DNA of 10,301 bases, taken from positions 1 through 10,301 of the forward strand of contig NW_021827455.1 of the NCBI RefSeq assembly GCF_006345805.1, written 5' to 3'. Position numbers and translations under genes: made by a program. The stretch's first letter is position 1. The number at the start of each line of letters is the position of its first letter. Shown one piece after another: positions 1,275 through 9,599 of the stretch. Source of the stretch: Octopus sinensis. Lineage: Eukaryota. Under the pieces are notes generated by a model. The model searched no databases. It was given only the letters and a program-made list of their open reading frames with translations, and was not told where the DNA came from.

Positions 1275-1602
1275 AGCATTCCATCGGCTACGACGTCGAG
1301 TGTGTTAAAACTGAATCGCCCAATAAAAAAATCTGCTCGTGAAATGAACGTGCCAATGGCCGAGTACTCCACAGACGCGCGTACCCTTAACGTATAGTCA
1401 TAAGGTGATGCAGTGTGACATAGACTGTGACAAAGCTGGCCATTTAAATTCCAGGTGCAACTCATTTTTGCCAGTTGTATGACCAGGAGCAACGTGAAAT
1501 AAAATGTATTGCCCTATTTTAAAAAGCACCACCGAGATCCGAACTCATGAGCTCTTACGATCGCGAGCCAAATATCCTAACCACTAAGCCACGCGCCTTC
1601 AC
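1275..1602 (-). mobile_element. tRNA-derived SINE, near full length, with a CORE-like segment after the head
   Basis: The - strand begins gaaggcgcgTGGCTTAGTGGttagg (A box, + 1581-1591), followed by a B-box-like gagttcggatctc (+ 1534-1546). The body resembles an octopus SINE family as remembered. Confidence 0.85.
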
Positions 1603-1654
1603 CATACATACATACATACATACATACATACATACATACATACATACACACATA
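1603..1654. repeat. (CATA)n microsatellite
   Basis: Read directly. Confidence 0.98.
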
Positions 1655-1918
1655 CGCTGAACAATTGAAAAATTTGCAGTTATTCTATCCAGATTACAAA
1701 TTTAGATTTATACCTGTAATTATTGGAGCACTGGGATATGTAACACTCAAAACCAGAAAGAAGAAAGCTGATTCGAAGACTATAGATCCAAACCATCATT
1801 GGAACTGTAAAAATCCGTAAAATTTGCCAGAAGTCTTAAGTATATATGAACCTGTCAAGATATGCAACTATAAGCATAAGAATACATACATAAAACAAAA
1901 CATACAAATCCGCATACA

Positions 1919-2538: not shown

Positions 2539-2551
2539 ACCGCGTGTGTAT

Positions 2552-2735
2552 CGTAGTCGATTTTCTTTCTCCGTCTTCTCTGCCTTGGACCTTTCCGTTT
2601 TTATGTTTCTGACGAAGGGCTCCGCTCGAAACGTTAAACCCTCCTTCTTTCTTTCCTTTCCTGACCGTCCAATAACACTATACTTGTTCCACGTCCTCGC
2701 GTTGTTGGTTTTCTCTTTGTTCATGTTGGATTAAC
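2552..2735 (+). mobile_element. 184-bp Penelope-like (pLTR/retrozyme-type) element, copy 1
   Basis: Homologous end to end with the reverse complement of 7990-8173 (both run cgtngncgatttt...ggattaac, then (TA)n). Contains a minimal hammerhead motif typical of Penelope-like elements. Confidence 0.75.
2605..2639 (+). ncRNA. Minimal type I hammerhead ribozyme motif
   Basis: GUUU (stem I, 2605-08), CUGACGA (2609-15), A, GGGC ucc GCUC (stem II, 2617-27), GAAA (2628-31), CGUU (palindromic ACGU stem III, GUU cleavage triplet ending 2635), AAAC (stem I', 2636-39). Confidence 0.75.
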
Positions 2736-3449: not shown

Positions 3450-3486
3450 TATGCATACATACAAACATACGTATATATATATATAT

Positions 3487-3531
<45 letters not shown>

Positions 3532-3650
3532 TATATGTGCGCGTAGTGTGTGTGTGTGTTGTGTCTGTATGTGTCCGTGTGTGTGTGTGTGTCCTTATGT
3601 GTATGTGTGTGTGTTTGTGTGTTTGTGTGTGTGTTGTGTATGTACATAGT
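3450..3650. repeat. (TA)n followed by imperfect (TG)n
   Basis: Read directly. Confidence 0.95.
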
Positions 3651-4169: not shown

Positions 4170-4427
4170 ATGAACACAATGGATACGCACAGGGGGTGGC
4201 GTCGGGGTAACGGAAGCAAAAGTAGTGGCAGCAACATTAATGGTTCGAACAGTAGAGGAGTGTGCAGCGGACATAACGAGATTAGTGCGTTCTCCAGCCT
4301 CAGATCTTCGCACATGCACCACCAAGAGACATCAAGAATTTACTCTTCATTCGTCTCGGTTCGACGAATGTTCTCCCATGACGCACGCCTTCAGTTTACT
4401 CTCGATTCCGCTTTATGCTGTCAAACG
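4170..4427 (+). other. GC/CpG-richer unique island; possible exon (MNTMDTHRGWRRGNGSKSSGSNINGSNSRG...)
   Basis: Non-repetitive and visibly richer in GC than its flanks, with several overlapping open frames. Possible donor CG|GTAAAC at about 4427/4428 where AT-rich sequence resumes. No homology recognised. Confidence 0.25.
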
Positions 4428-4539
4428 GTAAACCGAATTAATATTTTACGTAAACATATTTTTTTTTTTTCAATTATAACAAAAGATATTTTAGATAAAA
4501 GAAAATGTTGTTTCCATTATTCATAACAGAAAAATAAAA

Positions 4540-4950: not shown

Positions 4951-5364
4951 TCTTTTTTTACTCTTTTTTTTCTTATTTGCTTCAGCATTTCTGTGGCCAT
5001 GCTGGAGCACCGCCTTTAGTCGAGCAAATCGACCCCAGGGCTTATTCTTTGTAAGCCTAGTACTTATTCTATCGGTCTCTTTTGCCGAACCGCTAAGTTA
5101 CGGGGACGTAAACACACCAGTATCGGTTGTCAAGCGATGTTGGGGGGACAAACACAGACAACCAACATATACACACAAACCATAATATATATATATTATA
5201 CGACGGGCTTTTTTTCAGTTCCGTCTACCAATCCACTCACAAGGCTTGGTCAGGCCGAGGCTATAGTAGAAGACAACTTGTCCAAGGTCCACGAAGTGGG
5301 ACTGAACCCGGAACCATGTGGTTGGTAAGCAAGCTATTTACCACACAGCCACTCCTACGCCTAT
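4951..5364 (-). mobile_element. Composite tRNA-derived SINE family X, copy 1 (tRNA head, CORE-like segment, internal microsatellite, 3' arm)
   Basis: A box tggctgtgtggtaa (+ 5339-5352) and B box gggttcagtccc (+ 5298-5309) on the - strand. Clearly homologous to 5992-6321, 7752-8347 and 9058-9473. Confidence 0.92.
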
Positions 5365-5446: not shown

Positions 5447-5798
5447 GTGGGGGCGCAATGACCCTATGGTTAGGGCAGTGGACTCGCGGTTGGAGGATCG
5501 CGGTGTCGATCCCCAGACCGGGCGTTGTGTGTGTTTATTGAGCGAAAACAACTAAAGCTCCACGAGGCTCCGGCAGGGGTTGGTGGCGACTCCTGTTGTA
5601 CTCTTTCGCCCCAATTTTCTCTCACTCTTTCTTCTTGTTTCCTGTCCCCGACTTCCTACGCAACCGCTGAGCCTGGATGCGCTTTCATCCATCTGTCGAT
5701 GCTCTCAGTGTCGGGGGTTGACCTGTCTTCTCTTCTGCGGGTCTTACGAATAACAAAGGACCATGTTTCGGACATCTCCCACTACAGAGGCTCAACAG
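5447..5798 (+). mobile_element. tRNA-derived SINE family Y, copy A
   Basis: Head gggggcgcaatgaccctatggttagggcag...ggtgtcgatccc (B box 5502-5513). The first 185 nt or so are homologous to the reverse complement of 7500-7680. Ends in a triplet-repeat tail. Confidence 0.9.
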
Positions 5799-5812
5799 CA
5801 ATAGCAACAGTA

Positions 5813-5848
<36 letters not shown>

Positions 5849-5892
5849 CCACCACCACCACCACCACAACAAACAACAACAACAACAACAAC
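5793..5892. repeat. (CAG)n-(CAC)n-(CAA)n compound trinucleotide repeat
   Basis: Read directly. Confidence 0.97.
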
Positions 5893-5991
5893 ACCGATAA
5901 CATCACTACTTCTATATTATTATCATATGAAATGTTATGTTTAATCGAGCCCTATTCTAAAGTGTGACCGAAGAAATATTTTCGATATATA

Positions 5992-6147
5992 CTCTTTACT
6001 TGTTTCCGTCATTTGACTGTGGCCATGCTAGAGCATCGCTTTTAGTCGAGCAAATTGACCCCAGGACTTATTCTTTGTAAGCCTAGTACTTATTCTATCG
6101 GTTGTCAAGCGATGTTGCGAGGACAAACACAGACACACAAACATATA

Positions 6148-6185
<38 letters not shown>

Positions 6186-6321
6186 ACACACAAATACACA
6201 TATGTACGACGGGCTTCTTTCACTTTCCGTCTACCAAATCCACTCACAAAGCTTTGGTCGGCCCGTGGCTATACTAGAAGGCACTAGCCCAAAGTGCCAC
6301 GCAGTGGGACTGAACCCGGAA
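5992..6321 (-). mobile_element. SINE family X, copy 2 (5'-truncated, 51-bp internal deletion)
   Basis: Homologous to copy 1. Stops just past the B box (cccggaa, 6321). Lacks the segment between the two tatcggt repeats. Confidence 0.9.
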
Positions 6322-7019
6322 TATCTGCAAAATATTTATTTATTTGTGTATTATTTATACAGTCCCTTTCTGAAGTTTTAGATAGGATGTTTTTAACCAT
6401 TATATATAATGTTTATAAATTAGATTAGAGTGTAGAGCACTTTCATTTACAAAGGCACGAGCGTCTATGTGAAATGTCATTAATAGAAAAGCATTCGTAT
6501 ATAATCTGTATGAAAGTTTCGTCTGCGGAAGTATAGGTTGTACGCTAATAATACTGAAATCAAGGCGAGCAACATTGTTTCTTTTTTTAAAAGGTTCTGT
6601 TACAACTTTACTGCAAGTGCATAACTATTCAACGGGAAAGACTGTCGAATTAAACAAACGTTTAGTCTAGTTTCGTTAATTTAGCTATCAATTTTATCAC
6701 TATATTTATTGCATGTTATGTTGAGTTTTAACTTGTTTTTGTAAATATGTTCATCTCGCAGATCGAGACCGTTAGCATCTCTCCAGCTATTCACAATACG
6801 AAATGTTTATGTTTTTTTTTTTATTACATTTGATCCTCAGCGGAAAGATCCATAGGAACTAGTTTCCAGACGGTTTGGTCGATCGTTTATTCCTACAAAC
6901 ACATTGCCAGTGGCCCTTGTTATTTGTTGCTTGTGTGTGAGAGACAGAGAAAAGCGTCATTTTCTATTCTAAATTTTAAGATTTGAATGGTATTTATTTA
7001 TTTGTGAATTGGTTTAGAC

Positions 7020-7316: not shown

Positions 7317-7375
7317 GTTTAGATAGTCACTGAATGCATTTTGTTCAGAAATTAGTCAGACAAATAGAGTGAAAT

Positions 7376-7680
7376 GCTGTTTGTTCCTTCTCGAGCCATA
7401 CCTGGCTCACAAGGGCCGGTTTCCCGGTTTCTTGGCGTATAGGTTCTCCACCTGGACGGGACGCCGGCCCATTGCAGGTGAGCTGCTAGATGTAGGAGGA
7501 AAGAGTGAGAGAATGTTGTGGCGAAAGAGTTAGCAGAAGTTTCGCCATTATCTTCTGCCGGAGCCGCGTGGAGTTTAGGTGTTTCGCTCATAAACACACA
7601 CATCGTCCGGTTTGAGATTCGAACCCTCGATCGTTCGACCGCGGGTCCGCTGCTCTAACCACTAGGCCATGTGCCTCCAC
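7376..7680 (-). mobile_element. tRNA-derived SINE family Y, copy B (different 3' tail)
   Basis: The - strand head gtggaggcacaTGGCCTAGTGGttagagcag...GGGTTCGAATCtc has a good A and B box. TSD atagagtgaaa at 7364-7374 and 7681-7691. Confidence 0.92.
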
Positions 7681-7751: not shown

Positions 7752-8347
7752 TCTCTTTTCTCTTTTACTTGTTTCAGTCATTTTGACTGCGGCCATGCTG
7801 GAGCACCGCCTTTAATTGAGCAACTCGACCCCGGGACTTATTCTTTGTAAGCCCAGTACTTATTCTATCGGTCTCTTTTGCCGAACCGCTAAATGACGGG
7901 GACATAAACAAACCAGCATCGGTTTTCAAGCAATGTTAGGGGGACAAACACAGACACACAATCATGCACTCACATTATATATATATATAGTTAATCCAAA
8001 CAAGAAAGCACAAAAAACACAACAACGCGAGGACGTGGAACAAATATAGTATTATTGGACGCTCAGGAAAGAGGAAAGAAGGAGGGTTTACGTTTCGAGC
8101 GGAGCTCTTCGTCGAAACATAGGAGAAGGAAAGATCCAGAGAAGGGAAGACAGAGGAAAAAAAATCGCCAACGGTATATACGAGACGGGCTTCTTTCAGT
8201 TTCCGTCTACCAAATCCACTCACAAGGCTTTAGTCGGCCCGAGGCTATAGTAGAAGACACTTGCCCAAGGTGCCACGCAGTGAGACTGAACCCGGAACCG
8301 TGTGGTTGGTAAACAAGCTACTTACTGCACAGCCATTCCTGCGCCTA
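7752..8347 (-). mobile_element. SINE family X, copy 3, interrupted by the Penelope-like insertion
   Basis: Both arms are homologous to copy 1. Extra 184 bp in the internal microsatellite. Confidence 0.92.
7990..8173 (-). mobile_element. 184-bp Penelope-like element, copy 2 (decayed hammerhead core)
   Basis: Its reverse complement aligns with 2552-2735. The core reads gtttCGACGAagagctccgctcGAAAcgtaaac (+ 8086-8118). Confidence 0.75.
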
Positions 8348-8457
8348 TTCTGTTCATTAAGTACTTACATTCTAGTCACCTCATCTAAAACCAATATATA
8401 AAATCGATACATCCATTCGCTATCTTCTACACCACAGCCATACATAAACACACTTTT

Positions 8458-9045: not shown

Positions 9046-9057
9046 ACAGCATATCGT

Positions 9058-9473
9058 TCATCTTTTACTTGTTTCAGTTTTTTAAAACTGCGGCCATGCT
9101 GGGGCACCGCCTTGGAGAAATATTTTAGTCGAATGAATCAGACTCACTAGTTATTTTCTTTTTTAAGCTTGCACTTTTATTCTATTGGACTCTTTTGCTG
9201 AACCGCTAGGTCACGGAGACGTAAACACACCGGCACCAGTTGTCAAGCGTAGGTGGGGGACAAAGAGAAACAGACACACACCCGCATACACACGGACATA
9301 GATATATACGACGGGCTTCTTTCAATCTCCGTCTCTGAAATCCACTCACACGACTTTGGTCGGCCCGAGACTATACTAGAAGACACTTATCCAAGTTGCC
9401 ACGCAGTGGGAACGAACCTGGAACTATGTGGTTGAGAAGCAAGCTTCTTACCACACAGTCGCGCCTGCGCCTA
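9058..9473 (-). mobile_element. SINE family X, copy 4 (more diverged)
   Basis: Homologous to copy 1 along both arms, with more substitutions. Confidence 0.9.
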
Positions 9474-9599
9474 TACAGACTTACATTAAATAATGTGTCG
9501 CATTTTGTCATAAGACGGCTGGTCGTGATTTGCGGTTACATTCCGTTGTTGATCGTGTTATCATATGTTATAGTCTTGTGCCTGTGAGCTTTGCCGAGC

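Follow-up and report, generated by a model that had tools for sequence, protein, structure and literature searches.

Does the 35-nucleotide motif at 2605-2639 on the plus strand of this stretch of the Octopus sinensis genome (contig NW_021827455.1; all 10,301 nt analysed are called the window here) represent a genuine hammerhead ribozyme, and if so, where did it come from and does it cut anything? Read as RNA, the 35 bases are GUUU-CUGACGA-A-GGGC-UCC-GCUC-GAAA-CG-U-U-AAAC, a minimal type I hammerhead with an intact core. The 5' strand of helix I (GUUU, 2605-2608) pairs with AAAC (2636-2639) and, because the bases just outside are mismatched, this helix is exactly 4 bp long. The core box CUGACGA (C3-A9, 2609-2615), which can be read directly and is also recovered by a loose pattern, is followed by an unpaired A (2616) between A9 and G10.1. 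Helix II (2617-2627) pairs GGGC (2617-2620) with GCUC (2624-2627), is closed by G10.1-C11.1 (G2617-C2627), carries a G.U at 10.2-11.2 and encloses a 3-nt loop 2, UCC (2621-2623). G12, A13 and A14 (2628-2630) lead into the loopless palindrome ACGU (2631-2634), in which A2631 is A15.1, C2632 and G2633 are adjacent and U2634 is U16.1. The next base is U17 (2635), and the predicted scissile bond lies between U2635 and A2636.

The general hammerhead core (C3 U4 G5 A6 N7 G8 A9, G12 A13 A14, A15.1-U16.1 and H17) is thus complete, and everything listed in the original prediction, namely the core residues, stems I and II and an ACGU stem III, is present on the plus strand at this position. That list did not include A2616, an extra base that a second copy in the window also keeps. 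Three helices cannot form within one molecule: only helices I and II (4 bp each) are intramolecular and, since ACGU is unable to fold on itself, helix III is possible only with a second molecule. I also considered a hammerhead that folds as a monomer, its helix III hairpin lying further downstream, and rejected it, as the sole AAAC that could pair with GUUU is the one at 2636-2639.

How often would such a motif arise by chance? For the loose pattern, CTGANGA-N6-30-CGAAAC, the expectation is 0.02 matches per window. A descriptor for the minimal hammerhead (min-HHR) specifies helix I of at least 4 bp, CUGANGA, a bulge of 0-1 nt, helix II of at least 4 bp with a loop of 3-8 nt, GAAA, complementary bases at 15.2/16.2, U16.1 and H17, and its sole match on either strand of the window is 2605-2639. 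When first-order Markov sequence that has the composition of the window was scanned (6.96 Gb, both strands), the full descriptor matched 5 times, and 138 times once the helix I requirement was dropped. The chance rate of the full descriptor is 7.2e-10 per base-strand, or 1.5e-5 per window, which extrapolates to about 3-4 chance matches per 2.5-Gb genome; real min-HHRs number in the thousands in genomes bearing Penelope-like elements, or PLEs (PMC4209133). The bulge and G10.1-C11.1 occur together in only 8 of the 138 random matches. The observation is confirmed, and at the per-window level the motif is not a product of chance.

A search with hammerhead models, proposed along with the original prediction, came back empty: the Rfam hammerhead models give no match at the gathering threshold, and none at E<=10 either on the window or on the 101-nt slice 2570-2670. 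This miss is to be expected of a motif without a helix III hairpin, but I still count it as a failed test, and membership in the class is therefore based on descriptor-type evidence. The published min-HHRs were themselves found with RNAmotif descriptors, not covariance models (PMC4209133).

The class in question (Cervera and de la Pena, 2014, PMC4209133) was defined as hammerheads without helix III or loop 3, predicted to act as dimers whose extended helix III forms between molecules. Every PLE examined has them in its flanking repeats, and thousands of dispersed, mostly solitary copies occur in metazoan genomes (PMC4209133). Against a random origin, its authors name several traits that lie outside their descriptor: consensus families that show covariation, a base after A9, G10.1-C11.1 and a palindromic 15.2-16.2 (PMC4209133). 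The last three are found here, as A2616, G2617-C2627 and C2632-G2633 within ACGU, the latter also supplying the palindromic 15.2-16.2 that goes with the missing helix III and loop 3. The motif shares with the published PLE min-HHRs the type I topology, the full catalytic core, the lack of a helix III hairpin, a helix I of 4 bp that lacks a defined loop 1 (theirs is 4-5 bp) and occurrence as a dispersed single motif, nearby pairs on opposite strands being described among theirs as well (PMC4209133). Helix II, in contrast, has 4 bp and a 3-nt loop here, against 6-8 bp in the Schistosoma mansoni and Drosophila virilis families, a length that is a trait of particular species' families and not a rule (PMC4209133). 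A further difference is that here there is no PLE open reading frame (ORF) or pair of pLTRs nearby, and the motif instead sits in a unit of fixed length.

That unit spans 185 nt, and the window holds exactly two copies of it by sensitive blastn. In copy 1 (2551-2735, plus strand) the hammerhead lies at unit positions 55-89, and this copy can be aligned over its whole length with copy 2 (7990-8174, minus strand, read from 8174 to 7990). Aligned globally, the two are 83% identical over 185 nt and their ends coincide, the 5' end reading [C/T]CGT[T/A]G[G/T]CGATTTT and the 3' end TTGGATTAAC in both. The distance from the cut site to the unit 3' end is 100 nt. The copies are inverted relative to each other, about 5.2-5.4 kb apart, and each is single, with no tandem repeat of about 185 nt in the window. 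I considered whether the two might be the ends of one PLE and rejected this, as pLTRs are direct repeats and the interval is full of SINEs and microsatellites. Further copies were sought in several ways: no homologue was found for the sense-frame translations of either unit, the antisense ORF of copy 1 used as a protein query returned only low-complexity HTHT/IYIY matches, DNA anchors found none in viral and metagenome collections, and neither exact-protein contig look-ups nor a query with a SINE-derived ORF found any.

In both units, one sense-strand frame runs for about 60 codons without a stop (2552-2731, plus; 7990-8172, minus), and the two translations are 59% identical; this frame is most likely a by-product of a stop-poor, pyrimidine-rich strand. 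A consensus fold of the two units contains a 3'-terminal domain at 2668-2733 (unit positions 118-183), with its equivalent in copy 2, closed by GUCCAA/UUGGAU, which is identical in both copies and lies a few bases from the unit 3' end. This predicted domain could be a recognition or initiation structure for reverse transcription, although a pair of sequences yields no covariation.

What has become of the hammerhead in copy 2? Its counterpart is a degenerate remnant (8086-8118, minus strand, read from 8118 to 8086), GUUUC-GACGAAGAGCUCCGCUCGAAACG-UAAAC, which differs from copy 1 at three places inside the 35-nt motif. It lacks U4 (C-GACGA), it has a single U where copy 1 has two, at 16.1/17 (ACG-UAAAC), and its G10.2 has become A, turning the G.U of helix II into an A-U (GAGC/GCUC) while G10.1-C11.1 is identical. 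Because U4 and one of the 16.1/17 U's are lost, the core of copy 2 is broken and it is not a functional hammerhead. The original prediction had pointed to GAGC/GCUC as a change that preserves stem II; pairing is indeed kept, and the change is a single pairing-compatible transition with no compensatory double change. Altogether the two copies show one one-sided helix change, that in helix II, and zero two-sided ones. Their identity is 91% in the motif, 90% in the adjoining segment 90-150 and 73% in the 5' segment 1-54, so with two copies there is no excess conservation of the motif over segment 90-150. Indels are common throughout the unit (8 of 189 alignment columns are gaps). The differences in copy 2 are probably best read as decay from an ancestral intact motif, because deriving the core from an ancestor resembling copy 2 would need two specific insertions.

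The surroundings of the two copies tell more about the nature of the unit. Copy 1 is directly adjoined at its 3' end by a 107-nt (TA)n microsatellite (2736-2842), and upstream of it lies a compound (AT)15(TG)13 microsatellite with an imperfect tail (2484-2550). The 3' end of copy 2 directly adjoins a (TA)n (7973-7989) which is the remainder of a TA run internal to a SINE-like repeat. A perfect (TA)n thus begins directly after both unit 3' ends, which is true of only about 1% of window positions. The SINE-like repeat is about 400 nt long and has four copies, all on the minus strand (4962-5364, 5985-6372, 7754-7972 plus 8175-8348, and 9054-9474), each with a (TA)n/(TG)n microsatellite between a conserved head and a conserved tail. 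The third of these is split by the hammerhead unit, and when the four are aligned, this repeat alone is interrupted within its internal (TA)n/(TG)n run, cleanly and by the 185 nt of copy 2. Around copy 1 there is no SINE head or tail, and I therefore rejected the possibility that the unit is part of the SINE. ARAGORN called no tRNA in the SINE-like repeat, and strings from its sequence found no match in the literature. With its internal microsatellite, the repeat resembles the very abundant SINE known from Octopus genomes.

The shared ends and the TA repeats at both 3' ends indicate that the unit is a discrete mobile element with a TA-repeat target. Such a context matches what has been reported of PLE targets: (TA)n is a preferred target of Naiad PLEs, and for Neptune the endonuclease linker has been hypothesised to mediate such a microsatellite bias (PMC8557442). 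PLEs are known residents of the Octopus genome (PMC13282606). Hammerheads are located within pLTRs, near 3' ends (Craig et al., 2021, PMC8557442). PAc, a PLE of Anolis, has its hammerhead cut site at +26, and its reverse transcription begins some 90 nt downstream of this, at +111-118 (PMC11167929), a geometry comparable to the 100 nt between cut site and 3' end here. Pfam gives no match at all for the ORFs of the window or for its X-joined open segments of at least 45 aa, and so no remnant of a reverse transcriptase or GIY-YIG domain; there is no ORF above 183 aa, and outside microsatellites open segments reach about 150 aa at most. The link to PLEs is consequently one of resemblance and target preference. 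PLE fragments usually show variable 5' truncation, whereas the 5' end here is common to both copies. Taken together, the extra base after A9, G10.1-C11.1, the palindromic 15.2/16.2 and the (TA)n-inserted small mobile element uphold the assignment to the PLE minimal hammerhead class made in the original prediction.

I therefore favour, at a probability of roughly 0.7, the reading that the motif is a PLE-type minimal type I hammerhead inherited within a 185-nt, TA-targeting retroelement unit. The unit would be either a short non-autonomous PLE derivative or a PLE terminal fragment of fixed length, inserted into (TA)n microsatellites by target-primed reverse transcription, and the consensus of its family would be expected to carry CUGANGA...GAAACGUU. 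With two units in one transcript, or in two transcripts, the ACGU palindromes would pair into a shared 4-bp helix III, the GUUU of one motif and the AAAC of the other would form helix I, and each core would cut after its U17, here between 2635 and 2636.

Does this happen at the locus itself? The original prediction proposed cleavage after 2635 in tandem or trans-paired transcripts, which might sever a host pre-mRNA because the motif lies on the plus strand like candidate exons. For the 35-mer, the minimum free energy (MFE) of the monomer is -6.8 kcal/mol in a fold whose UGACG/CGUUA pairing buries the core, and the hammerhead-competent monomer fold reaches -2.9 kcal/mol. The double-hammerhead dimer (4 + 4 + 4 intermolecular bp) comes to -3.9 kcal/mol versus -13.6 for two separate monomers, and an alternative extended dimer, the MFE structure, to -20.7 kcal/mol. 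Such energies are not decisive because they ignore tertiary contacts, but the calculated values are in line with published reports of poor activity in this class. In published assays, min-HHR cleavage was nil for the monomer and low for dimers, trimers and constructs with an extended helix III, and activity was seen mostly at non-physiological Mg2+ (PMC4209133). In PAc, no RNA-seq reads end at the hammerhead cut site (PMC11167929). Neither blastn nor the descriptor finds a sense-strand partner or second sense copy in the window, and a plus-strand transcript running over both copies would contain copy 2 as antisense, with which copy 1 would pair. Such a transcript could form an imperfect duplex of about 185 bp (83% identity), burying the hammerhead. 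With no sense partner, the other copy inverted and defective in its core, the double-hammerhead fold disfavoured and a class that cleaves poorly, the proposed cleavage finds no backing here.

The host pre-mRNA part of the proposal fares no better, since no exon evidence was found in the window: there is no Pfam match in its ORFs or in open segments of at least 45 aa, the ORF at 4170-4523 has no homologue among 1.84 billion representatives, and the other long ORFs are derived from repeats or microsatellites. Cleavage at 2605-2639, or of a host pre-mRNA, is thus unsupported. As copy 1 is solitary, it is most likely catalytically silent, a relic whose sequence is intact.

What else could explain the motif? 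One could suppose that a copy of a pyrimidine-rich repeat merely drifted to a hammerhead-like string and that the family never had a ribozyme. Copy 2 without two core bases, a motif that shows no excess conservation and no Rfam match, a string short enough that a few chance matches per genome are expected, and the fact that it was an initial scan that singled it out for study all speak for such a resemblance. I nevertheless consider it unlikely, given the expectation of just 1.5e-5 per window, the scarcity of the bulge with G10.1-C11.1 among random core matches (8/138), the two specific single-base insertions that would be needed to make the core from a copy-2-like ancestor, and a mobile-element context of TA-repeat targeting that is independent of the motif. 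I would put at similarly long odds the idea that the motif was kept for something other than cleavage, either as an RNA structure recognised by a PLE protein or as a passenger parasitising PLEs. The literature lends this idea some weight: the authors of the min-HHR study do not exclude other roles (PMC4209133), catalytic mutants of the PAc hammerhead had no effect on insertion in vitro (PMC11167929), and Naiad PLEs thrive without hammerheads, which led to the suggestion that "HHRs may simply parasitize PLEs" (PMC8557442). Against it, copy 1 keeps its catalytic residues, most simply through selection for catalysis in master copies, and the window offers nothing that bears on the question.

More improbable than either is that the ribozyme is active here, its transcripts pairing in trans with those of other family members and being cut after U2635 so as to sever a host pre-mRNA. 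The core is intact, the palindrome permits pairing in trans, and dimeric and trimeric S. mansoni min-HHR constructs do show some cleavage (PMC4209133). However, the window holds no sense-strand partner, the trans contacts total 12 bp that are mostly A-U (-3.9 versus -20.7 kcal/mol for the best dimer), and the monomer MFE structure sequesters the core. The activity of the class is low and mostly confined to non-physiological Mg2+ (PMC4209133), the PAc hammerhead site lacks RNA-seq read ends (PMC11167929), and exon evidence was not found in the window. Slightly less probable again, and the least probable of the readings considered, is an undescribed short, PLE-mobilised and (TA)n-targeting unit whose extra-small hammerhead (4-bp helices I and II and a zero-loop helix III) would dimerise in trans between dispersed copies, with intronic sense copies occasionally cutting host pre-mRNAs.

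Several other features of the window are worth recording. The segments 5458-5538 and 7590-7670 form an inverted repeat pair of 81 nt with 77% complementarity, and the ORFs lying over its arms (5525-5944, plus; 7352-7603, minus) have similar starts, MCVF...KLH.APA; this looks like a further, unclassified repeat family. An open segment at 1581-1817 (plus) contains '...FIPVIIGALGYVT...' and has no Pfam match; it is reminiscent of the C-terminal part of certain non-LTR retrotransposon ORFs of invertebrates. In E-value mode, Rfam returned dozens of "miRNA precursor" matches (mir-3149, mir-297, mir-1277 and others) far below gathering, at 2456-2540, 794-941, 399-488 and 3450-3560. I rejected these as miRNA genes, as they are hairpins of compound (AT)n/(GT)n/(TATG)n microsatellites.

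By itself, the finding leaves existing knowledge unchanged. With it, the known Penelope-type minimal hammerheads gain one more lineage and one very compact variant, as well as a clean case of a min-HHR carried in a 185-nt unit of fixed length that inserts into TA microsatellites, one of them inside a SINE. If conservation held across the family, the unit would offer a small and convenient substrate for asking whether min-HHRs cleave in vivo or have another role in PLE retrotransposition.

How does the unit compare with other small elements that carry hammerheads? Animal non-LTR retrozymes form tandem arrays of small units with canonical hammerheads, are related to the pLTRs of PLEs and have reported dispersed monomer derivatives (PMC7229834; 10.64898/2026.07.22.740005). 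The unit described here shares with them a small (about 170-400 nt) non-coding unit, one type I hammerhead and a proposed dependence on PLE machinery. Tandem arrays and canonical hammerheads that make loop-loop contacts set retrozymes apart (Cervera and de la Pena, 2020; Li et al., 2026, preprint), whereas here the units are single and in opposite orientation, without the tandem array that marks a retrozyme, the motif is minimal, and the ends are the same rather than permuted. The Sm-alpha elements of Schistosoma are likewise short non-autonomous retroelements with a type I hammerhead, but these SINE-like elements carry a canonical, highly active hammerhead with tertiary contacts. Finally, the dimeric or double hammerheads of newt satellite 2 and ASBVd (Forster et al., 1988, as cited in PMC4209133) likewise have a helix III too weak for folding as a monomer, and their activity comes from the pairing of two copies; they keep a helix III of 1-3 bp with a small loop and loop-loop tertiary contacts, whereas the octopus motif is loopless.
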